Below are positions 1 through 13,273 of a DNA stretch of 13,273 bases, piece after piece. The notes under the pieces are model-generated. The model made no database searches. It saw only the letters and a list, made by a program, of their open reading frames with translations, and was not told the DNA's origin. The stretch comes from Amoeboradix gromovi X-113. Its lineage: Eukaryota > Fungi > Sanchytriomycota. Position 1 is the first letter of the stretch. Each line of letters opens with the position of its first letter. Made by a program: the position numbers and the translations under genes. The DNA lies in the NCBI GenBank assembly GCA_018985225.1, contig JADGIF010000237.1:1-13273 (forward strand), written 5' to 3'.

Positions 1-147
1 TGAAGTGTAATAGTGATATTTTATTTGAAATAAAGATTGGATGAAAGAGTAAGAGAATAGCTGTACAGAATATTTATTTTCCTTTTATACTCGCCAACTC
101 CGCAACTAGCTGAATGTCCACTCGCCTCTTAAATCCATAAAATTAAT

Positions 148-326
148 AAAGCTGAAATAATGTTCCAAGTTGTTACAGAAAGTTTGTCCAGTTTTTATAT
201 TTGATGTCCCGTATGTACTACTCAAACTTCTACAATGCTGTGAAGAAGCCCAATTTATAGAAATAAACATATAAAAGCTTTTGTTCACTAATGAATACAG
301 ACCATTTGACGGCAAGGAACATGTAA
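148..326 (+). pseudogene. Degenerate TnpB/Fanzor C-terminal fragment (Zn finger + RuvC-III region)
   Basis: Manual translation gives KAEIMFQVVTESLSSFYI*CPVC (148-216). After a frameshift it gives AVKKPNL*K*TYKSFCSLMNTDHLTARNM* (237-326). The second part aligns without gaps to the 9802-10054 copies (TLKKTNLESYSCT*CHFEVDMDHMAPRN and TLKRNNLET*TCTKCHLKIDRDHMAARNT). At DNA level, gaccatttgacggcaaggaaca matches gatcatatggcagcaaggaaca. Confidence 0.6.
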
Positions 327-804
327 TGGATTGATTGTTTTATGAGTATCTCTTAGAAAATTCTTGGTACTCTAAGAAACCATGACTTTCAATGAGGAGC
401 AATAAATTACTTTTTATTACTTTCCATCTCATATCTAGTATTCTTCCTATATCATCATACTCCTAGGCAATACCTTCCTCAGTGTTACCTTCAAATACAT
501 CAAATCCGTTTTATCTTTTTCTTTCAATCCTTTACTCCGTGTCTACTTTTTTAGTGGATTAAAATGTTTTCCATATTCAAGATTATTGATCTGCGACTGC
601 AATTAGAAGACGCGGCAATGTAAATGGGCTACAACTTAATAAATTCTGACTTGTAAAAAGCAGGTGCGATAGTAAAGTGCGCTAATTTGTAATGTAAAAC
701 ATTTTGTGTCAATAAAATTGAGTTTGTTTTGCATCATAGATTATGGCTTTTTTAATGTTTTATTCAAACATCTCATCTAAATTCAATAGGCCAAAAGATT
801 CAAA

Positions 805-1947
805 ATGAAGATTCTCAAGAAATTGAAATCTTATTTTGAAGAGCCTAGCGATTTAAACGAAAAAAATAACACCCAAGACACACGTATTACTAATAACATC
901 GATGCGAATGTTTTGCTCATTAATCCTAATGCGCATCCAAAAAAAATTGAAATTCAGAAAACTGAAAAGGTATCAGATATAAGCATTTACGGACAAACAC
1001 CTAACATCAACATCCCAAAGTCTCCGAAAATGGCTGCGCCTATGTCTCATGCCAATCATAAGAAGCCGAAACCATTTTTGAAAGACATATCTGATAGATC
1101 AGAAAAATTCAGCATTGAAGCCAACACCTCATTTAATGAAATTAGTGAAAACGAATTAGAAGTGCTCATTCCCAACATATCGGTAGAAGAGTTAGATGAT
1201 TTTTCGTATGATTCTGTTCATGGGAGCTCAACGCAATCAACGGGACAATCAGTTGCCAATTCAAACAACAAGTTCAACTTTAAGTCTCACAATCAGCCCA
1301 GTCTAGAGGATGAAGACAAGCTTAAATGGATACCTCGCAATGTCGAAATAGACGATAAATTTGACTGTTCTGAATCCAACAGCGAAAATTTAAATAACTT
1401 GATTGCATTGAATTGTTTTGAGAATTTCACTGCTAATAATATCAGGCGAAAGTCTGAGGCTGATTGTGACTTCAAGTTTTACAATCACACACGTGAGCGT
1501 TCTGAGTCGCTTAGAGGTAGTTCCACTGCTGGACTCACAAGCACTTTTGAAAATATCAGTACTTCACATATTGATATAATCTCTACCGGAATCAAAGACA
1601 TTGAGTTCTTGAAGCAACTAGATGAATTGGACAAATTGCGTAACAAGTCTGATTCAGATCATGACTCATACATTGATTACGATGTCTATTTAGAAGATAA
1701 AATCAGATATTTTCAAAAGCGTGGAATCAATCTCCTCGAGAAGTTAGAATCATGCAACCAATCGCAGTTAGATCAAAGTAATGAGCACTCTTTTATGAAT
1801 TCAGGTATCATTGAATTAGAGGAGTATGTGGATTACGACTCTGAACATTCGCTGTTTGACAATCCAAACAGCGTCGAGTTTGAACAGTTCATCGATCCGG
1901 ACAGCAAGCTAGTCGACTCCAAGTGTCAACTAAACATAAACCACTAA
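805..1947 (+). CDS. Hypothetical protein, 380 aa, S/N/D/E-rich, probably largely disordered
   Basis: Long ATG-initiated ORF in AT-rich DNA, ending 32 bp from the convergent Arp3 stop. No recognisable domain. Confidence 0.75.
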   Translation: MKILKKLKSYFEEPSDLNEKNNTQDTRITNNIDANVLLINPNAHPKKIEIQKTEKVSDISIYGQTPNINIPKSPKMAAPMSHANHKKPKPFLKDISDRSEKFSIEANTSFNEISENELEVLIPNISVEELDDFSYDSVHGSSTQSTGQSVANSNNKFNFKSHNQPSLEDEDKLKWIPRNVEIDDKFDCSESNSENLNNLIALNCFENFTANNIRRKSEADCDFKFYNHTRERSESLRGSSTAGLTSTFENISTSHIDIISTGIKDIEFLKQLDELDKLRNKSDSDHDSYIDYDVYLEDKIRYFQKRGINLLEKLESCNQSQLDQSNEHSFMNSGIIELEEYVDYDSEHSLFDNPNSVEFEQFIDPDSKLVDSKCQLNINH

Positions 1948-1979
1948 ATAAATACTATTTTGAATCAATTTTATTTATT

Positions 1980-3219
1980 TTATCCCATTTGTCCAAATAC
2001 TCGAGAATGTCTAACAATTCCAGGCCCGTATTCCTCGTAATCTTTTTTACTGTGACAATATTGTAGAAACTCAGGAGTGCTAGCTAGCAGTGATCCTCCA
2101 AACCAGACAGCGTACCTTTGTTTCTTATGGGTGACCACATTTACATCAATCGGGGCTGGCTTCATTTTAGATACTACGTTAATAACAAGTACTTTGTTCT
2201 GCGTATGCTAATCTCTCATCAACTGATCTCTTAATGTCCCGCTGCAATCTTCTTCCAAAATCCTTGTACATGGTGGAACCTCCACTTAACACAATGTTTT
2301 TGTATAAACCTCTTCTGGTATCAATTGGACAGCTCTGTATGCTATGATCTACACTGTCTGGCAAGCTGGTAGTAAAGTCTGGATTACAAATCTCTGGACT
2401 AAAAAATGATTCAGGTCCCATAAATCGTTCGTAGCCAACATCAATGGTGTATTCTTTCTTTGTTATGCTGTGATAGTCCGTGTGCTGCTTGATATACTTG
2501 TCGGGTTCTTGTTCAAATTTTTTAAACTCTTTAACAACATCAGGGCATGTATAGCTGTAAAGTTCTTTAATTCTTTGACTGATTAAGAGCGAGTCTTCTG
2601 GTGGAATAGGTTCGTTTCTATCTCTTAAGCACTGTTGGATAAATTGGGTGATATCTCTACCAGCAATTGGAACATGTTTAATGGCACTACCAATGACATA
2701 TCCCTCAGCAACAGGTATAACATGGGTAACACCATCTCCACTATCAATAACAGTTCCCGTTAATGAGTAATTCTTTTCTTTGTTTTGGATCCAGGAAGCA
2801 GCCAAAGCCAAAACTGCTTGAACAGCGATATACAAACCAGGTACGTTAAAAGTCTCAAAGAATATTTCGGCAGTATACTCTCTGTTTTCTGGAGGATTTA
2901 GTGGCGGTTCGGTTAGCAAAATATTATGCTGTTCGGGATCACAATGCAATACGTTCATTAACGAATATTGCCAAAATGATTCCATGTCATCCCATTGATC
3001 TACCATGCCATGCTTCATAGGATAGCTAATTTGATAAGTCTTTTGGGCAAAGGCATCGTCACCAATATACATGTCTAAATCATTCAAAGGTCTTTTTGTC
3101 AGCTGGGAGGTAAGCGGCTGTTTACTTATTACAGTAGGAATGATATATTGGGGATCGTTATTCCCAGCATATCCCATTTTAGTATAACCAGTACCGCAGT
3201 CTAAAACAATATTGGCCAT
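1980..3219 (-). CDS. ARP3: Actin-related protein 3 (Arp2/3 complex); exons 3219-2193 and 2173-1980, 406 aa
   Basis: Arp3 motifs [65 protein letters not shown] and [10 protein letters not shown] are present. Removing a 19-nt intron joins the two ORFs in frame ([14 protein letters not shown]). Confidence 0.97.
2174..2192 (-). other. 19-nt spliceosomal intron in ARP3 (GTACTTGTTATTAACGTAG)
   Basis: GT-AG ends, contains the in-frame TAA, has a branch-point-like TTAAC next to the 3' AG, and its removal restores the frame of a highly conserved protein. Confidence 0.9.
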
Positions 3220-3286
3220 ATATTAATGTTTCACAACTGGAGAACAGAAAAATAAATTTGAAATATACTCAAAACTCGCAAGAGCG

Positions 3287-3408
3287 ATAGAGTTGCTTAC
3301 ATCGCAGCATTGCGAGCAATTATTCAAGAGAAAGAAAGTGCTCTTTTGCAACTAGCTAGAGACCGCCTAGAAACAAGGAATGTCTTGAAATACGTGCATG
3401 CCAGTTGA
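3287..3408 (+). pseudogene. Degenerate TnpB/Fanzor C-terminal fragment
   Basis: Frame 1 gives IELLTSQHCEQLFKRKKVLFCN* (E-x-x-T-S-x-x-C motif). A shifted frame gives LARDRLETRNVLKYVHAS*, resembling IDRDHMAARNTYIKYLHPC at ~9800-9850. DNA tgcatgccagttgaatcc resembles tgcatccttgttcaatcc at that locus. Confidence 0.5.
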
Positions 3409-3596
3409 ATCCATTATCAACGCAATCCCCACATTGTAGTTGCTGACACAAGTATTACGTTTTCATTCTCAAATCATAAGAATCCTCATACTGTGTGCAT
3501 CATACCGTGCTAGAAACACGGCTCAATCCAGACATTATGAATTTTTTCAAGTCTGTCATAAACAAAAGGCAAATAAAAATCAAATTTATATTTACT

Positions 3597-6500
3597 TCAA
3601 GAGCAATCACTTGTAACAAATCTAGCATCTTGGCATTCTACCTTTCCTTTAACCAGTTTGCACACAGTGCCATCAGGACAATCTCTCTCCAACCATTTTC
3701 CGACTAAGGAAGAATCGTCGTTTCTCTTCATGAATCTCATAAGCCATTTCTTTTGTGGCGTTTGCAGGCACTGCGCATACCTGTTGTTACTTGCACAAAC
3801 CTCTGGATACTCAAGAGGGTCACATGCCTGTCCGTCGGTTATGCTCAAGCACTTGACATCATCAGTACTGCTTCCATAAACACTGCTCTCTTCCACTTCT
3901 AAGGGACATATTTTTGGTACTTCTAGCATATCGGTAATTGCTATACAACTAAACGGCTCGTTGTTACAAAACGTTCCTTCTCCGCATGGCTGTATTTCCC
4001 ATTTACCTAAATTAATTAACCAATACCATTTACACAAATACCAAAGTCTCTTCCACTGCATTTATATTCGCCTTCTGTGGAGCATGATGAGTGATTTATT
4101 ATTTCGCGTACACAATAATCATTTGACTGTGTGTATTGTTCTCTAGCCGAAGAATAGTGGTTGTAATAGCCCTCCGTGTGATCTGGTAGAGCTACATCCG
4201 TTATCCATGGTATGGTTGAAGACACATCACTAATACCAACATTGCCATCAGTGTTCGTGGCAGCGGCTGTAGTTGTGATGAAATCAATGGTGCTAGATGA
4301 TTCTATGGTTGGCATTGTGTAGTAAGTAGAGTCAGAGCGACTAATACCACTAATTCCAACGCTTCCATATGTGCTGGTTGCCATGGATTCGGTAGTTTTT
4401 ATAGCTACACTGGTAGTAACATCTACATTGCCTTCAGAGTCTGTGTGAGAGCTTATAAAGTAAGTAATAGTCTCAAACACACTTGCAGTTACTGTTTCTG
4501 CAGCACATTGAGTGGTTGATACGTCTGCTACATTTAATTCACCGCTTGTTCCATTTGTAGAAATTGTTGAATTGCAATCCACCTGACTTGGCCAGTCGCA
4601 TATAATTTTAAATAGTGCATCTGGCCTGCATATAGTTCCAGAGCTGCAATCCTTTTCAATCCATTTACCATTGGAGCACTGCACAAACCCATGCCCGTTA
4701 CATTTGTAATCGTTTTCACTACATGTCTCTGTAAGATCAACTAAAGGATTGCAAGACTCAGTTGTTGCAGATGTGTTTTCGTTCGTACCAACATCTGCTA
4801 TGCTAGCTACTGAATCAGTAGCGTTACAGGTAGGACTATAACTACAAGTAGCACCTGCACCTTCTATACTCTCACAAAATAAACCTGCACTACATGATTG
4901 AACAGCCCATCCAGATGTCCCACATATGGCAAAATCAGTCTCACTGACGCATATTGGGGTATCTATTGACCATTCACAAGTAGTACTATTCTTAATGTTC
5001 AGGGATGATTGACAACCCTTATTGGCAGCCCATTCATATGGATTAGACTTATCAATAGGAAGAGCATCAACAGAAGTATTGTTACAAGAGTCTACAGTAG
5101 GATAGCCGCAAGTGATTCCTCCGTCTTGAATAGATTGACAAGCTAGACCAGCTGGACATTTTAGTGCTGCAAAAGTGTTGTTTGGTGTACATTGGACGAA
5201 ATCGACTCCGCTACATTTATAAGTATCGACAGCGAAATCACAAGGGCTATTGTCTGGAGTTATGGCACATTTGTCCTCATTAGAAGCTGGCTCAGTAGCA
5301 GGCTCTAATTCAACTTGAGTTTTGACTGGGGTAGAAGCAGTACTAAATGGATGAACATTTGAACAGCTTGATACCCTACCGCAAATAACACCAGGTCCCT
5401 CCATAGATTGGCAGTAAGTTCCCTCACCGCAAGAACGAACAACGTATCCCTTTGAAGTACATACAGCAAAATCTGTAGAATCCACACAAACAGGAGTGTC
5501 TTTATTCTGATTGCATTCAGTACCAGTTACTATATTGGAGTTGCAATCTAACGGTGGAGCCCAGGATAATGGATTGGATTTATCAACAGCTGTGACGGCT
5601 TTAGCGTCAAATGGACAGGAATCAGCAGTAAGAAACCCGCACTCAACTTCAGAGGCTGACAATTGATTACATTGAGTACCAGCTCCACACAATCTGTTTT
5701 TGTATTTGTTACCAACACACTGGACATAATTTCTGCCACTGCAAGTATAAGAGTCAGTTTCACATTCTGTATCTTCAGGTATAACTTCACAATTTCTATC
5801 CCTCTTGTATAAAGCAGGGCACATTGGTGCTTCTATAGTACATTCAATTTTAAACTCATTCCGTTGCTGACAATGGGTCCCACTAGCACAACTTTTTTGA
5901 ATCCATACGTTGTTATCGCATTGAAAGAATCCGTCACCAACGCATCTATACTCACCTTGTAAACACCCAAGCTGCTTATCAGCAACAGGTAAGCCACATT
6001 TAGCAAATGTCGGATTTTCAGTTGTTTTAGAATCAGTTGCAGCAGTAACACTACTTGCGTCTACACTATCATAATTTGTTGGACACACAGGTCCATTTCC
6101 AGGCCAGTCACATAGAAATCCCAGTCCGTTATTTATAGGTCTACATTGAGTACCAGGTGCGCAAGAAGCTCTCTTCCATAAGAAGGTAGCCTTGTTATTT
6201 ATAACTCCTGGTGCACATCTAATGAAATCAGTACCATAACATCTATCATAGTCGGTACCAGGTGTGCACTGTGTTTCTGGTTCAACAATCGCAGGACAAC
6301 CATTAGGAATGTTAGTAGGAGTCGAAGCTGCTGTAGTTGTAGCTGGCGCAGTTGTGGTAGACTTTTTGGAGGTGCTTGAAGATTTACTTGATGTAGTTGT
6401 AGAAGCCTTAATTGTAGTTGTAGATGCCTTTGTTGTAGAGGCCTTTACTGTGGTTGTAAAAGCCTTTGTTGTGGTTGTAGATGCCTTAATTGTGGTTGTA

Positions 6501-7318
6501 GCACTTGGTGCACCGAGACAGATTTGCTTAGGATTAGAAGAGTCAGCAATTCCTTGTAAATCAGAAGCGCAAAGTGCAGGATTTACACTTAAACTACAGC
6601 CAACACGAGGATCACAGTCATAATTAACAGGTTGCTTGCCAATATCGATATCTACATTTGTTGCCTCAGTTGAAGATGGATCTGCGAAACAGAAATCCCC
6701 AAATTTTGTATTCTTTAAAATAGTTTCCACAGCTGGACCACCACTCTTAACGCATCCAGGCGCACTGTTTGAAGGCAAAGCATTTTTCAAACAAGATTTA
6801 CCAACATAAGGACCATCAGTTTGAATCTCGATTAGGGAGCATCCATAATAAGGAGCAAAGGCATTACCGACTAGGCCGGTCCATTGCAGTACGTATTTAC
6901 CAGCTTTTAGATTCATTGGAATTTTCACAGTGGTGTCAAACCGCTCAATATCAGTAGTGCTCTTTTGGTAATCACAGCCACCACGACCGTTACATGGATG
7001 TACACAGTCACCGTATGCATATCTACCTGGACGTTCATCAATACCATAGCAAGCCAGTTTAAGTACATTTTGTTGGAAAGTTAATTCATTAATGGAGTCA
7101 AAAGGAACAAAACTTAATTTTACATAGCCACCACCATGATTGTTACTAACCCAACCAACTTTTAATCGATCGCCAGGACTAACTTTGTTTGTTGGACTAG
7201 AACTAGTAAAGGCCTCGCAACTAGGAGTTAAAATTCCACCTCTACTTGGATTTGTGTTAAATGGGAGAGGACAGGACATCCATGAATGACCAGACACAAC
7301 CAACAAGTTGAAAAGCAT
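3597..7318 (-). CDS. Secreted multimodular protein (~1233 aa; exons 7318-4027 and 4006-3597): N-terminal His-brace LPMO-like domain, Thr-rich linker, nine Cys-rich putative chitin-binding (CBM19-like) modules, Ser/Thr-rich stretch
   Basis: MLFNLLVVSG|HSW places His at the predicted mature N-terminus. A second His lies in NNHGGG, and YVLQW and YYGC match the LPMO beta-sandwich C-terminal pattern. Modules of the form C..C.G..F.QC....W....C..GT.C recur. A 20-nt intron joins CVNG to KWEIQPCGEGTFC within module 8. Confidence 0.85.
4007..4026 (-). other. 20-nt spliceosomal intron (GTATTGGTTAATTAATTTAG)
   Basis: GT-AG ends, contains the in-frame TAA, has TTAAT next to the 3' AG. Splicing yields CVNGKWEIQPC, matching module 7 CSNGKWIEKDC. 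Confidence 0.88.
6393..6501 (-). repeat. Imperfect coding tandem repeat (~21-nt unit, TTT(I/T/V)KA(S/F)) forming a Thr-rich linker
   Basis: Recurrent gttgtaga(a/t/g)gcctt units, encoding TTTIKASTTTTKAFTTTVKASTTKASTTTIKASTTT. Confidence 0.85.
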
Positions 7319-7555
7319 TCTGTTTGATAAAATTGGGCATCAGTAGCACTTTATAGTCCGACGCAGACATCACATGTTATTCTGGTACACCGTAATCTTG
7401 GCATTTTCTTGGCATACGTCTAAATGACGATGATATTTGGTTTTTACGCAAAAATAGGTCAGTTTAATGGTATTTAGGCTTAAATCAATCTATCTTTTTA
7501 ATTATTTGCTTTACCTTGAAATCTTTACGATATAAACGCTGAAACAATAGGGATA

Positions 7556-7834
7556 ATGGAAAATCTTTTGATTAAATTACACTTTGAGACAAACGTGACT
7601 AAAAACGTGGAAAACATAATACAACTGAACTACCAGCTATCTTCAGAATATTTTAAAATGCAAATGTGGGCAGAGAGTGAAAGACATGCTAGAACTGCGT
7701 ATAATATATGCAGAAGTAACAAAATCGTGAACTTAAATGTTGTCAAGTTATTGATAGAGATATTCCGAGCGACTGGTAATATCTCTCAGGAAAAGATATT
7801 TATTGGAATAGAAACTAAACTATCACAATTGTAG
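7556..7834 (+). CDS. Small hypothetical helical protein (92 aa), TPR-like segment
   Basis: ATG-initiated ORF divergent from the LPMO-like gene. YQLSSEYFKMQMWAESERHARTAYNI resembles a TPR helix pair. Confidence 0.45.
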   Translation: MENLLIKLHFETNVTKNVENIIQLNYQLSSEYFKMQMWAESERHARTAYNICRSNKIVNLNVVKLLIEIFRATGNISQEKIFIGIETKLSQL

Positions 7835-8280
7835 CTTTTAAAAAACGTTGTCATTCATAGTTTAGCGGACTCAACCTTCAGCGACGCAATGATGTTAAAG
7901 TTTAACAATGGAAATTGCAGCTAGCAGTTTCACTGCAAATTGCTTTCTTAGTAGTACTCTCAAAATTGATCGCCTTAGTACACAATGTAATTGATGCTGA
8001 GTCTTGAATAATATCAGAGTACCCATTTCTTTAGATTCTGTCTTGTCCAGAATTATCTTCGAATGACATTCATGTAAACGGCGGTTTAGAGTTTGCGGGC
8101 GTATCCCATCCGTTGATCTTAGTTATACCGAGCAATAAATTGCATCTTCTGGACATATTTTGTTTAAGTTTCTTGTAAATCACTTTAAAAGGTGCAACTA
8201 TTTGATTAATCTGATGGGGTACCAACTCTTGAAATGCTCGATCAAAGTTTAATTCTCAACAGAATAAATTTATTAAAAAA

Positions 8281-9471
8281 CTACGCCGTTCGGGTATATT
8301 CAACTCTTTGTGGAGTTATTGGCGTATTTGGTGATCCAGGTATTCCATATTCATTGTTATGAACAAATATGCCATGTGGTATTCGTCGAGTTGCAATAGT
8401 AGGCGATAAAGTGGCACTTCTACTCAACAGTGCAGCCCTATATCTCTCTTCCCTATCAAAATTGTAACTCAATTCTGCACTTGAAAAAGTAGACTTATAC
8501 AGTTCACGAATGGTTTCATTCCATCCGTAGAAATAAGCATTTAAAGCACCGCTTAATTGTCCGAGAGTTCTATACATCACAAAAACAAACTCGCTGGGGA
8601 ACACATCTAAAATAAAACTGATTTCTACGATTAGCTCAGGGATAGTTACCAACAAGTAGAGAAGAGAATAAGAGGCAAAAAAGAACAGGATTCTATATTC
8701 TTTAAATCTGTTTTGCTTGTTTATATTGGGTTTCTCAATCATCTCTATTTCAAAATTAGAGGCTTTTACTTTTGGGATCGCTCTTCTATAGCCACAAGTT
8801 TGGCATTGCATGGTATGGATAACTAGACGACAATTAGGGCATCTCCTATCATCCTTGTTACCGTGGAATTTGTTTCCTTGGAAAAGTCGCTTCATGTTCT
8901 GTTGATGAGTATGCAGCCATGAAAAACTAAAGAAATAGCAATAAGATAGTATGCAACATGCAATTGACTTTGGGACCACTTTCAAAACTATGCGAGGCCA
9001 AGCCGGAGCGGTAGGTAAAATGCACTGACCCATTTTGCTTCCGAAAGGTATGTTCCAAGTACTACCGATTGTTAGGATTAAAGGAAATATCCAAATCAGG
9101 GGCAAGATATACAATTCTCTATCCTTGAGTAGCTGTAAATAATAATCACTTTTGAACGGCGACTTCAAAATAACAAATGTTAGCAATGCTATTCCACATA
9201 GAGCCACGTCACTTGTGATAACCATCCATGTGTAAAAGGAGCAAAGAATCTTAACAAATATACCAACAAATGCAGCATCTTTGTGTAGAATAACAGTTAC
9301 AGTGCTTAACAAAGATTCAAACAGATTCGCAATCATCAAAATCAAAATTAACCTATGCCTCATATTTTTTAAACTTTTTTCGCTAAACGATAAATAGCAC
9401 ATGCAGATATACATACATAAGAGTATCGATATCAGCCCTACAAAAAAAAAGAATTGTTCATTGAATATCAT
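8281..9471 (-). CDS. 7TM G-protein-coupled receptor-like protein, Git3/Gpr1 (cAMP-receptor-like superfamily); 396 aa from ATG 9471
   Basis: Seven hydrophobic segments. RHRLILILMIANL at TM2, YSLLYLLVTIP at TM6 and GALNAYFYGWNE at TM7 resemble Git3/Git3_C patterns. The third intracellular loop is long. The first ATG is at 9471 (the ORF track used TTG 9480). Confidence 0.75.
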   Translation of the reverse strand: MIFNEQFFFFVGLISILLCMYICMCYLSFSEKSLKNMRHRLILILMIANLFESLLSTVTVILHKDAAFVGIFVKILCSFYTWMVITSDVALCGIALLTFVILKSPFKSDYYLQLLKDRELYILPLIWIFPLILTIGSTWNIPFGSKMGQCILPTAPAWPRIVLKVVPKSIACCILSYCYFFSFSWLHTHQQNMKRLFQGNKFHGNKDDRRCPNCRLVIHTMQCQTCGYRRAIPKVKASNFEIEMIEKPNINKQNRFKEYRILFFFASYSLLYLLVTIPELIVEISFILDVFPSEFVFVMYRTLGQLSGALNAYFYGWNETIRELYKSTFSSAELSYNFDREERYRAALLSRSATLSPTIATRRIPHGIFVHNNEYGIPGSPNTPITPQRVEYTRTA

Positions 9472-9697
9472 TGAGCACAATTTTTCCTCTCCTTTTGTAG
9501 AAGTTATGTTACACAGCCGATCACATTGTTAAATTGCACAATCGGCTAGAAACCTCTAACCTGATACTTGCGCTGCAGCATAGGTAGAAAAAATCCAGGC
9601 TTATTTTAATAGTCATTCAAGCAATTTAACTTCAATTTATGGCCGAAATATTAAAGAAATAGTTATCAGCTAATCGATTTATTCCTCGTTAAAAGAC

Positions 9698-9800
9698 CTG
9701 ATTTCCGAGAAAATCGAGAATTTCCACAGAGAAACTAATGCTAGATCTCCGTTACAGTGATTGCTCCCGCTTGCACTACCCTGAGGCGGGATTGAACAAG
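9698..9800 (-). ncRNA. Candidate omegaRNA scaffold / element right end downstream of the TnpB/Fanzor remnant
   Basis: Three consecutive minus-strand hairpins start right after the nuclease tail: TCCCGC/GCGGGA (9791-9786 with 9770-9765), ACGGAGA-T-CTA-gcat-TAG-TT-TCTCTGT (9752-9726, one G.U pair), and a weaker stem at 9722-9701. They are followed by ...TCAG|G. Confidence 0.4.
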
Positions 9801-9801
9801 G

Positions 9802-10054
9802 ATGCAGATACTTGATGTATGTGTTCCTTGCTGCCATATGATCTCTATCTATCTTCAAATGACACTTTGTACAGGTTCAGGTTTCTAAGTTGTTTCTCTT
9901 TAAAGTACCATACCTCCTACATGGCATCGAATTTGTTCCTTGGTGCCATGTGGTCCATGTCCACTTCGAAATGACACTATGTACATGAATAGCTCTCCAA
10001 ATTGGTTTTCTTTAGAGTGCCACATATTGTCATGTCATCGAATATCCATGCTTG
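9802..10054 (-). mobile_element. TnpB/Fanzor nuclease remnant: two tandem decayed copies of the Zn-finger + RuvC-III segment
   Basis: Copy A (10054-9935): QAW..SMT*..CGTLKKTNLESYSCT*CHFEVDMDHMAPRN. Copy B (9930-9802): SMPCRRYGTLKRNNLET*TCTKCHLKIDRDHMAARNTYIKYLH. Both match the TnpB/Fanzor consensus TS-x-x-C-x-x-CG...C-x-x-C-x3-(I)DRD-x-x-AARN. The pair is visible as a DNA direct repeat with a period of 111-112 bp. Confidence 0.85.
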
Positions 10055-10295
10055 GGCCAGTTCCTCAGTGTTGATGAATGTATGCTGCACCTGCTAGTTA
10101 TTTCTTTAGAATTGATTTACCACTTGTGAAAAGGAATAATATCTAGTATTTAAGCCATTAGAAAAGTCTGGAAAAGTCGTCCAACTGTATAAAAATGCAT
10201 ACAAATTCGCGATAAATGATTTATTCAAGAAAACAATCGAGCTGGTTAATTTGACCCTAATCTTCAGTTATGCGTTGGCCGTGCTCTCATTGGCG

Positions 10296-12719
10296 CTAAT
10301 GCTGATTTCTTCTGTTCTTCAGTTTCATTGCCAAGAAAAGCAATATTGAAAGAGAAATTCCAATAAGAAACATCATCTTAATGGATTTCGTATAATTGTT
10401 CCTGTTATAAGTATGCGCTAATTCATCTAAACTGTTCTCAACCCATTGTCTAGACGTTACCTCTTTTATATAATATGCTTCAATTGCCCATCGTGGTGCA
10501 GAATAATCCCATAACAACCTAAATAATCCATATCCCTTTTCGGGATTATATATCTCATTTAAATCCGGGCTTACTCCGCCAAATAAAAATGACCACAACA
10601 AGGCATTACAAACTATAACAAGCCCAATCGAATTTTTGTCAAAAAGTACACTAAACAAATACCCAAAATTAAATGCTACAAAGTACAGAGACAGCATTAT
10701 TAGTGCTAGACTAAGAAAGTCCGATCGATAATCAACGAACATAATGAGCCCCAGAGTATAAAACAAAGAAGCAATGACAATTTTTGATAGATCAACTGTG
10801 AATTTGGCTAAAATATAAGGAATGGTAGGCATACCAGAGCTAGTATCTCTCCAGTAAACAGGCATCTCATTACCAAATGTGACCAAAGCAGAAGTTTGGC
10901 CGGAAAACAGTACACCAACACAAATTAGCATTCCAGCGTAATTAATGTAGTCAACAGGTGCTCTGCAGGTACTTTGAAGGACCGCAGGGGCCACATCACA
11001 CACTTGAGAGGGTTGAGTCCCCAAATATTGAAATTGTTGAATTGCAATGCTAACAACTACGCCCGCAATGAAATGGTTAATGTCGTCAAACAAGAACTTC
11101 AACCTATTTCTAAATTGTTGCTGCGAAGCCCTCCTTAATAACAGCCAATAAACGATAAATACGTTTGGAGTTTGTCTAATTGGGTCAGCAGTAAATGTAA
11201 TAAAACGGACAAAGGTAACAATGCTATATAGAAGTTCAGTTAAAACGTCCACTCCTGATTCTATAAGATGAAGAGCAAACGAATAAATCGATTTCAACTT
11301 TTTTAAGGACATAAAATTTGATTTGGTACCCATTCTTCGTAATGATCTCTTTTTCATTGTGTATTCGTCAAACCTGACTCTTTGAATTGGTGTTCCATCC
11401 ATATAGCATTCCCAGTAGTCGAACAAATCTTCGGGTCTAAAATCTGGATCCCACGGGCATTCTATCTTTCCACTAATTACATCCATTGCAAAATCCGCCG
11501 GATTCAATTTCTCATCTCCACAATTGAATCCTAGCTCATTAAAATATGGTAGGACGTGCTCTGTAGCTCCAAAGTAAACAACTCTTCCACCTTTTCCCAA
11601 AAATAACACATCTTGAAATTCATAAAATACTCTAATTGATGGAGAATGGACTATAGAAGCTATAGTTATGTTGTTATTCCTAGCTAAATTGTTCAAAATT
11701 TGGAATAGTTCTAATGCGGTGGAGCTGTCCAAGCCACTAGATGGTTCATCTAGAAACAAAATACTTGGGTCAGTAACAACCTCCATTCCAATGTTAACTC
11801 TTTTGCGCTGCCCACCACTTATGCCTCTGTTTTCTACATCTCCAATGACAGAATTGATTACATTTCCAAGCCCAAGAAAATCAATTATTTTGAGCACTTT
11901 CTTGCGTTTTTCAGCATTTGAAATGAAAGTAGACAGCCTCATGTTAGCGCTATGCATTAAAATATTGCTGACGGTTAATTCCCTCAGCATTATATCCTCT
12001 TGTGGACAAAAACCAATTAATTTGTGGTATTTTAACAAATCTTCTTTTTTACCGTTCAAAAATATGGTCCCACCATTTTTTTTTATTTTCCCAGTTAAAA
12101 GACAAAACAGAGTTGTTTTACCAGCACCTGAAGGACCCATAATTGCGCACATTTTACCTGATCTGAAAAGGCCTGACACATTAGACATTACAGTCGAACC
12201 GTCAGGTAACTTGTACTCAAGGTTGTGGAATTCAATGTCAATTGAATGGCTATTAGATATTAATGGAGTTACGGCTAACTCGTTCGTTTCATTTTGTTTT
12301 AATATTTCGATGTAAATTTTGTTTCTTATAGACTGCCGGATGTTCAGCGATGATTTGATCTTGAAAATGGCCACAATTGCCAAGAGGCCGAAAAAAATAA
12401 CAGCCAGCATCCCTATTCTAACTGGTTTGACAGTTCCAGGCGGACAAACAGCTAATCCAAAACAACTTAATGGCATTTGACTACCAGTTGGGCAATAATA
12501 GCCCAAAGGACATCTCTGGATGGTATCTGGGGTGCTGCAATAAAAACCAGGGCAACAATAATATGGCTGAATTGTGTTATTTGGGCAATAAAATCCTGCC
12601 GTGCACAAAACAGGGCTACTAGTCGCGGTTATTTGAAAATAACCAGGCTTTGTTTTCCACAAACTGTTTCCTACAGCCTTGCATGTTTTCGTGTCAAGAG
12701 AAGGCCTAGAACTGTTCAT
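10296..12719 (-). CDS. ABCG (White-like) half transporter with Cys-rich N-terminal region; true start probably further upstream (13051)
   Basis: Walker A GPSGAGKTT, signature ISGGQRKRVNIG, Walker B ILFLDEP and H-loop are present, with NBD before TMD. C.xG.YC repeats and a TM helix precede the NBD. Confidence 0.93.
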   Translation of the reverse strand: MNSSRPSLDTKTCKAVGNSLWKTKPGYFQITATSSPVLCTAGFYCPNNTIQPYYCCPGFYCSTPDTIQRCPLGYYCPTGSQMPLSCFGLAVCPPGTVKPVRIGMLAVIFFGLLAIVAIFKIKSSLNIRQSIRNKIYIEILKQNETNELAVTPLISNSHSIDIEFHNLEYKLPDGSTVMSNVSGLFRSGKMCAIMGPSGAGKTTLFCLLTGKIKKNGGTIFLNGKKEDLLKYHKLIGFCPQEDIMLRELTVSNILMHSANMRLSTFISNAEKRKKVLKIIDFLGLGNVINSVIGDVENRGISGGQRKRVNIGMEVVTDPSILFLDEPSSGLDSSTALELFQILNNLARNNNITIASIVHSPSIRVFYEFQDVLFLGKGGRVVYFGATEHVLPYFNELGFNCGDEKLNPADFAMDVISGKIECPWDPDFRPEDLFDYWECYMDGTPIQRVRFDEYTMKKRSLRRMGTKSNFMSLKKLKSIYSFALHLIESGVDVLTELLYSIVTFVRFITFTADPIRQTPNVFIVYWLLLRRASQQQFRNRLKFLFDDINHFIAGVVVSIAIQQFQYLGTQPSQVCDVAPAVLQSTCRAPVDYINYAGMLICVGVLFSGQTSALVTFGNEMPVYWRDTSSGMPTIPYILAKFTVDLSKIVIASLFYTLGLIMFVDYRSDFLSLALIMLSLYFVAFNFGYLFSVLFDKNSIGLVIVCNALLWSFLFGGVSPDLNEIYNPEKGYGLFRLLWDYSAPRWAIEAYYIKEVTSRQWVENSLDELAHTYNRNNYTKSIKMMFLIGISLSILLFLAMKLKNRRNQH

Positions 12720-13051
12720 TTAGTAATCTTGCGCCTAATAATCCGAACCCCTCAGGTTTAGACTGTTGAAATGCGGAAGCACAAGTGGAGACTAAAGTTG
12801 TCCCATGTGAGCAAGATTCTAAATCAAACGGTTTTCCAATTACAGGTAATTTATTGCGATGATCAATATACTTTAGCAACACTAGCAAATGACAAATTAG
12901 ATATAATAGCTAGACCAAGTGTTGTAAACATTTGGCGACTTGAGTTAAATAACCATTTGTAGTACCTGTATCGCCCAAGTCTACTCTCTTCGTGATTTTC
13001 AAGCTGCGTTAAACCTGTTAATCTTTTTTTATCAATTGCAAATGACTCCAT
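12706..13051 (-). other. Probable 5' extension of the ABCG gene, split over two further reading frames
   Basis: ORFs 13051-12863, 12888-12706 and 12719-10296 overlap consecutively, each offset by +1. Joining them supplies the missing N-terminal TM (MFTTLGLAIISNLSLLVLLKY). Confidence 0.5.
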
Positions 13052-13060
13052 ATTATCTCA

Positions 13061-13182
13061 TGCCGACCATGGGACACACTCTGTAAAAACTAGACTGGGG
13101 GGTAAAAAGCGAGTGACGAGATTAACCCAGTTGAAGTTTTCACAGTAGTGTCCCATATTTCTTCACCTAGGCAATAGGCGAA
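13061..13182 (-). ncRNA. Candidate Fanzor omegaRNA scaffold
   Basis: Hairpin TTCGCCTA-ttgcc-TAGGTGAA (13182-13162) is followed by an 88-nt multi-segment stem (13156-13069): ATGGGACAC/GTGTCCCAT, CTGTGAAAACT/AGTTTTTACAG, ACTGGG/CCCAGT. The single non-Watson-Crick pair in each of two stems is G.U only on the minus strand. The structure begins at the end of a Fanzor-like ORF. Confidence 0.6.
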
Positions 13183-13273
13183 ATTACTTTGTCAGTGATC
13201 CTTTGTTGCCAACCTGGTCTCTCACCATTCGCTAGCAAACTATCTATCACTTGAAGATTATTACAACATGCAT
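13167..13273 (-). mobile_element. 3' end of a Fanzor1-like nuclease ORF, truncated by the window edge
   Basis: Translates as (N/D/H/Y)ACCNNLQVIDSLLANGERPGWQQRITDKVISPIA*. This resembles the Fanzor1 tail after RuvC-III (N-A-x-x-N-x-x-x-I/V...G-x-R-P-x-x-x-x-R) and is followed immediately by structured RNA. Confidence 0.55.

Follow-up and report, generated by a model that had tools for sequence, protein, structure and literature searches.

Dead copies of mobile elements derived from Fanzor, the eukaryotic TnpB, occupy three gene spacers of a single contig of the fungus Amoeboradix gromovi X-113 (Sanchytriomycota). The contig (JADGIF010000237.1 of assembly GCA_018985225.1, our C478) was analysed over its whole length of 13,273 nucleotides (nt), called here the window; the source assembly has 10.5 Mb in 1319 contigs. 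The copies fall into two families. Family A is a single internally deleted, non-autonomous derivative, amplified about 500-fold in this genome. We consider it very probable that the spacers were invaded by two Fanzor-derived families in this manner, family A being the amplified deletion derivative and family B a separate element. An earlier interpretation of the same DNA, made without database searches (the sequence-only reading), had derived these remnants from Fanzor/TnpB, and had proposed more than one family and a large expansion. All three proposals were borne out: the PF07282 hits of sibling copies reach 74 bits and the DNA-profile match in the window has an E-value of 1e-84, families A and B are distinct, and 503 right ends of family A plus 233 termini of family B were counted in 10.5 Mb.

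A six-frame search of the genome with PF07282, the C4 zinc ribbon located between RuvC-II and RuvC-III, gave 560 candidates, and all 150 of those scored passed the Pfam cut-off, with 49-74 bits. Pairwise comparison of 30 loci revealed a common core of ~600 bp with sharp limits. The repeat unit of family A, which we call the mini, has ~620 bp: a non-coding left end of ~180 bp, the last ~144 codons of a Fanzor2-like gene, and a right end. In 36 independent copies with flanks, the mini starts with (R)CAGCTYGA... and ends with ...TTTAACGAGGAG, and the information at its right edge drops from ~1-2 bits to at most 0.2 bit in the flank. The left and right termini are not inverted copies of each other, and we saw neither terminal inverted repeats nor a target-site duplication in these 36 full copies; IS607/IS605-type elements likewise have neither. 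In comparison with a 671-amino-acid (aa) Fanzor protein from contig C542, homology began no earlier than the last ~120 codons in any of the 29 fetched loci (reference copy excluded); the start was at residues 550-553 in 22 of them and upstream of residue 542 in none. The mini, which starts at ~551 of the 671 residues, lacks the RuvC-I segment with its aspartate (DPGV, near residue 470 of the C542 protein). Coding homology extends farther upstream, to residues 429-466, in two longer relics, L056 and L058, which share the 3' part, tail and right end of the mini from exactly the fusion point.

The termini were counted genome-wide as 25-26-mers with up to 3 mismatches, using reversed patterns as control. 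The right end of family A had 503 matches (about 48 per Mb) and the left end 463, with no control match for either. The 246 bp directly upstream of the fusion point occur in only four places in the genome; for each copy of this coding segment there are more than 100 minis. The best 40 DNA matches to family A were all full length, with 86-93% identity. The shared fusion point, the paired size of the two end counts and the scarcity of the upstream segment together indicate that the copies descend from one deletion derivative.

Within the window, family A is represented by a rearranged mini and by an old relic (coordinates in the table). Both were located with a DNA profile (nhmmer) of the shared repeat, built from 25 genomic PF07282 loci. 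For the mini, the profile matched the reverse strand at 10254-10055 (E 3e-50), 10036-9931 (E 3e-21) and 9923-9670 (E 1e-84). Its left end lies at 10079-10245, with the left-end 25-mer at 10209-10233 (0 mismatches). A diverged Zn-ribbon/RuvC-III segment of 106 bp (9931-10036) is 79% like family A, and the 3' part (9683-9923), which comprises CxxC...DRDHMAARN as well as tail and right end, is 92.6% like it; family-A positions ~197-378 are absent. Two adjacent copies on this strand had been predicted at 9802-10054, and they were recovered: the peptide CTKCHLKIDRDHMAARN is encoded near 9880-9930, and a stop-interrupted second version adjoins it. Since the two Zn-ribbon/RuvC-III segments share 73% identity, they do not reflect a recent tandem duplication. 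The stop-free piece at 9682-9876(-) matches PF07282 positions 42-59 with an E-value of 0.0012 and 19.4 bits, below the cut-off of 26.3 because only 18 domain residues are left in it. The boundaries are visible also in the alignments of other contigs carrying copies (one DNA run), which leave the window exactly at 9683 (n = 46) and 10244 (n = 51). The left end is located ~50 nt past the stop codon of an ABCG transporter gene, and the right end ~200 nt ahead of a receptor open reading frame (ORF).

The old relic was matched by the same profile at 213-325(+) (E 2e-8) and 344-404(+) (E 1e-6). Its blastn identity to the majority sequence of family A is 84% and 74%, and its protein-profile score is only 2.4 bits. 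When the 671-aa C542 protein was used alone as tblastn query, only the pair at 9775-10027 was matched in the window; the relic was missed, and the DNA profile was thus needed to detect it. The sequence-only reading had placed a remnant at 148-326(+). This remnant is real at 213-325 and 344-404, but bases 1-216 belong to an unrelated miniature inverted-repeat transposable element (MITE), which abuts and truncates the 5' side of the relic. The MITE family, ~460 bp long, is found also at L040:2689-3146; it has inverted ends of ~32 nt (ATGGGACATCAAATATAAAAACTGGACT...) and 1519 first-look candidates in the genome.

The third site, at the end of the contig, belongs to family B. At ~95% identity, the last 205 bases of the contig recur in at least 40 other places, and nearly all of these are contig ends. 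An open frame in contig C184 ends ...EFRTSKLCYSCHG...CTHCDVVVDRDVNACCNNLQVIDSLLA, and the reverse strand of the window continues from ACCNNLQ to the stop; the C184 frame matches PF07282 at 33.4 bits, above the cut-off. The fragment predicted at 13167-13273(-) therefore stands: it holds the final 34 codons of another Fanzor family, continuous with the C184 frame, and since the contig goes no further, a 3' end is all that this site shows. The family-B terminus, TGGGACAYRCTCTGT..., has 233 matches in the genome (control 0) and is found in the window at 13070-13095 without mismatches. Together with an inner arm it forms a hairpin with a stem of ~27 bp (-38.9 kcal/mol, z -4.2), and none of 200 shuffles was as stable. 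This hairpin is long and imperfect, and contains two opposed copies of the terminal motif (13069-13160). Relatives of family B include intact ORFs of 734 and 685 aa with PF07282. Family B is a separate, young and recently active element.

The copies of family B are so uniform that the assembly breaks there, and the family is a main cause of its fragmentation. Contigs that end in family B, including C953, C951, C648, C413 and C700, often do so within a few tens of bases of one point in the element. The ends of the ~460-bp MITE and the terminus of family B are alike (79% over 28 nt, E 0.004), and the MITE may be a gene-less partner of family B. We also detected at least eight contigs from elsewhere in the genome (one DNA run) that join the left boundary of family A (10244) to the family-B terminus (13069/13070), and two that join the right boundary of family A to the family-B terminus on the opposite strand. 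At L035, a family-B end lies inside a family-A tail. These direct junctions, together with L035, indicate that the two families are often nested or adjacent.

Genes that could belong to source elements are present in the genome, in other families. A genome search with PF00239 gave 12 serine-recombinase gene matches. In contig C459, the product of one such gene (TnpA) has a Resolvase domain (62.5 bits) and a weak match to a MerR-type helix-turn-helix (HTH), under the Pfam cut-off, and a Fanzor gene follows; this order of TnpA and Fanzor is the layout of IS607. TnpA was seen beside a Fanzor2-like gene in other families on four contigs (C459, C542, C578 and C392). In the PDB, the C542 Fanzor matches L79 of mimivirus best, a TnpB-like protein (E 1.6e-13). 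The public proteins closest to this Fanzor reach no more than 37-38% identity, and several come from brown-alga records. In two loci, at C459 (L054:1212-2826) and C542 (L031:1473-3488), TnpA and the N-terminal extension of the Fanzor overlap out of frame by ~600 nt. The overlapping copies are only 33-44% identical, and the ATGs of the C459 pair are separated by 7 nt; the overlap may be a way to make both proteins from one eukaryotic mRNA. The TnpA frame of C542 has no ATG before residue 127 of its 210 aa, and most of the N-terminal HTH is gone; the "671-aa Fanzor" of this contig includes ~200 residues of the alternative frame. The gene-bearing IS607-like loci are themselves flanked by family-B fragments and a family-A mini (L031:4272-4342; L054:364-1005), which indicates that the spacers are saturated.

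One internal deletion of a longer Fanzor-coding element produced the mini, which then multiplied to about 460-500 copies. We propose that an IS607-type serine recombinase TnpA, acting in trans on the two ends, may have moved it, and the 3' segment would have been retained for the right end and as template of an omegaRNA, as in TnpB/Fanzor systems. Several points weigh against this proposal. Mobilisation by TnpA and the coding of an omegaRNA by family A are suggested by analogy only. A full-length family-A element with TnpA was not found, the four longer copies being partial. The left end of the mini had no counterpart upstream of those TnpA genes that were sampled, and a search of this left end for a TnpA remnant, with the C459 TnpA as query, gave none (E >= 0.6). 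The tail of the family-A copy in the window folds no better than shuffles (z -1.1), and for the majority sequence the z-score ranges from -1.2 to -3.5, depending on length. Finally, the assembly is fragmented and of low coverage, and intact copies may hide in collapsed repeats.

The folding results bear also on a different interpretation, in which the minis would be living ghost guide loci: transcribed, possibly by read-through, and processed to omegaRNAs, with the right flank serving as guide in trans. A surviving Fanzor would then use these guides for homing, element maintenance or host regulation. The model for this is Spizellomyces punctatus, where ghost omegaRNAs function with SpuFz1 (PMC10432273). 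In family A, the right end is highly conserved with unique flank directly after it, and the tail has no codon-position signature and little divergence. The neighbours of the minis fit as well: in 16 loci, the nearest upstream ORF is co-oriented with family A in 13 and opposed in 3 (a small sample, with crude ORF calls), and in 4 of 25 loci (L002-L028 set) an upstream open frame ends 7, 13, 29 and 33 nt before the left end, compared with ~50 nt in the window. The orientation of the downstream ORF shows no bias relative to family A (8 vs 11). However, the 130-nt 3' tail of the mini had no match at the 3' ends of the five intact or near-intact Fanzor genes sampled, the support for structure is weak, and the overall divergence of 7-15% fits neutral decay. 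We thus regard this interpretation as unlikely, and the present-day use of minis as guide donors is not supported so far. Slightly less likely still is its broadest form, in which the ~500 minis would constitute a standing guide library, expressed by read-through from the co-oriented upstream gene, with the right flank as guide of a surviving Fanzor2 acting in trans. If true, an IS607-type element would have given rise to a chromosome-wide network for RNA-guided homing or regulation in a eukaryote. The upstream co-orientation, with the same limits of sample size and ORF calls, is a lead for the suggestion of the sequence-only reading that such remnants supply terminators.

A large set of 3' remnants could also result from many full-length Fanzor genes that decayed independently, with their 3' parts kept preferentially, for instance for the omegaRNA region. 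This is how the remnants had been seen before the genome-wide counts, and protein searches do return mostly residues ~549-648 of the 671-aa reference. The counts contradict it: the copies share a common fusion point (residues 550-553 in 22/29), a conserved left end is attached to them, the left and right ends are nearly equal in number, and the adjacent coding DNA upstream survives in only four copies, a ratio of more than 100 to 1. Independent decay is very improbable on these grounds, and we keep to the amplification of one deletion derivative.

We next consider whether the frames of family A are alive. Substitutions were counted in the 36 copies relative to the majority-rule sequence of the 620-bp mini, which served as coordinate system only, with no frame repaired. 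Singleton substitutions comprised 30 synonymous, 113 non-synonymous and 10 stop changes. The synonymous share among singletons, 19.6%, equals the random expectation (19.2%), as is proper of copies in neutral decay, and the singletons are distributed over codon positions 1, 2 and 3 as 52, 48 and 53. Only 7 of the 36 copies have an intact frame, stops and frameshifts being found in the other 29. The family-A copies now decay neutrally and their frames are dead. Of the variants shared by several copies, 34% are synonymous, and codon position 3 is over-represented among them (76 vs 44-49), which indicates that part of the subfamily diversity arose in a source gene that was still coding. A coding signature is absent from the last ~38 codons, and their divergence is low, a pattern that would fit constraint on RNA or on the DNA end of the source element. 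None of the 150 scored PF07282 hits or of the four copies of the upstream segment was an intact family-A gene. The copies are relics of an old burst. These data leave little room for a small host protein family, that is, a Fanzor C-terminal domain domesticated in the ~144-codon frames. Many copies do have open frames of 138-149 aa, and the shared variants show some synonymous excess, but few frames have survived intact, private substitutions are neutral with 10 stops among them, the frame starts without a start codon, and with the RuvC-I segment absent the nuclease could not form; we consider a host protein highly unlikely.

Finally, not all the sites that had been proposed are Fanzor remnants. 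The sequence-only reading counted at least four Fanzor loci in 13 kb and named two weaker candidates; three sites are real (213-399, 9682-10245 and 13069-13273), but those at 3287-3408, 7351-7389 and 8097-8195 do not rise above the level of shuffled DNA. Here we used a protein profile of the Fanzor C-terminus, made of four families, and as null the best score per shuffle in 100 shuffles (mean 4.3 bits, 95th percentile 7.2). The piece covering the site at 3287-3408, 3262-3405(+), scored 3.7 bits, within shuffle noise, and Pfam was silent for it. Around 7351-7389, the pieces 7320-7376(-) and 7373-7489(-) scored 3.2 and 1.4 bits, and the profile listed no piece at 8097-8195. The top piece in these two spacers, 7629-7727(+), had 5.3 bits, still inside the shuffle range. 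The DNA of 3220-3600 and 7319-8280 has no second copy in the genome, and an nhmmer search of the window with families B, C and D and the long family-A copies found nothing beyond the three sites. Chance resemblance to a short low-complexity motif (CxxC...DRD) does apply to the three discarded sites; for the confirmed ones, with DNA E-values from 1e-84 to 1e-6, hundreds of near-identical copies and reversed-pattern controls of 0, it is refuted and hardly deserves consideration.

The remaining gene content of the window is compact and eukaryotic, and introns are not evident in the long ORFs. The nearest cluster of the ABCG transporter protein is rich in Mucoromycota. Rfam and tRNA scans were both empty, including the spacer 7319-8280.

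Table. Features of the window, with the evidence or remarks for each.
Feature	Position	Strand	Evidence or remarks
Family-A mini with both ends, internally rearranged, two partial copies	9682-10245	-	DNA profile, blastn, PF07282, contig breakpoints
Old 5'-truncated family-A relic	213-399	+	Zn-ribbon/RuvC-III at 213-325; right-end tail at 342-399; internal deletion between them
Family-B 3' tip	13069-13273	-	34 codons at 13170-13271; stop at 13167-13169; hairpin at about 13069-13160; contig ends inside
Terminal part of ~460-bp inverted-repeat MITE	1-216		blastn 83-99% to copies elsewhere; contig begins inside
Spacer DNA, Fanzor signal undetectable	3287-3408	+	Unique in genome; 3.7 bits; Pfam none
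Spacer with two rejected weaker candidates	7319-8280		Unique in genome; best piece at most 5.3 bits
380-aa ORF	805-1947	+	Pfam: no match
Actin-family gene	2179-3219	-	
1100-aa ORF	4016-7318	-	Only Pfam match a sub-threshold CBM_19 (chitin-binding) at residues 855-899
Git3-like receptor	8281-9480	-	
ABCG transporter	10296-12719	-	

The closest parallel to family A are the Spu-1 ghosts of S. punctatus, which comprise 134 loci vs 42 gene-bearing ones, are ~550 nt long and are flanked by inverted repeats (Saito et al. 2023, Nature; PMC10432273). SpuFz1 functions with omegaRNAs from these loci, and the use of guides in trans was proposed in that study (PMC10432273). Like family A, they are short, have no working Fanzor gene, outnumber the gene-bearing copies and have a right-end region in common with gene-bearing loci (L056 and L058 in the case of family A). 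They differ in that Spu-1 is a Fanzor1 element with 30-nt inverted repeats, whereas family A groups with Fanzor2/IS607 and has no inverted repeats. The omegaRNA of Spu-1 comes after the stop codon, while family A keeps a dead gene remnant of ~144 codons. Family A also numbers about 500 copies, its genome being less than half as large as that of S. punctatus, and no matching intact gene is left.

IS607-type Fanzor2 elements were described as free of both inverted repeats and target duplications (Bao and Jurka 2013, PMC3627910), and terminal inverted repeats were described for the mimivirus element (Jiang et al. 2023, PMC10530073). Fanzors were reported in "up to 122 copies" per genome, with 20 extra stand-alone guide-RNA copies in Chlamydomonas (PMC10530073). 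IS607-type Fanzor2 elements such as ISvMimi and ACa-1/2 share with the present case a serine-recombinase TnpA beside a TnpB-like gene (here in other families of the genome), the lack of inverted repeats and target duplication (here in family A), and non-coding conservation at the 3' end. In contrast, they are low-copy, gene-bearing and mostly found in giant viruses, and family A is a non-coding mini that a cellular genome carries hundreds of times. The Chlamydomonas guide copies and the bacterial IS200/IS605 derivatives are likewise dispersed deletion derivatives that keep the ends and the guide region, and they differ from family A in transposase type, host domain and scale. Among the bacterial forms, palindrome-associated elements are non-autonomous derivatives of IS200/IS605 type. 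Classical MITEs resemble family A in being small, high in copy number, located in gene spacers and derived by internal deletion, but they have terminal inverted repeats and target-site duplications, and family A has neither. A true inverted-repeat MITE family of this genome is the one that ends at position 216 of the window.

The role of Fanzor nucleases for their elements in eukaryotes is still open. To our knowledge, a set of gene-less ghost loci has been described from one chytrid only, and the Fanzor2/IS607 lineage is otherwise, as far as we know, found mostly in giant viruses. The genome of A. gromovi provides a second, independent and much denser ghost-like case (~48 right ends per Mb), and it also encodes serine recombinases. 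Family A is a very dense case of a known kind of element, in the Fanzor2/IS607 lineage, and involves no new principle. It shows that a single deletion derivative, once amplified, can give the appearance of "3' retention". The repeats of families A and B explain the fragmented assembly, and gene finders will mis-call them as small ORFs.

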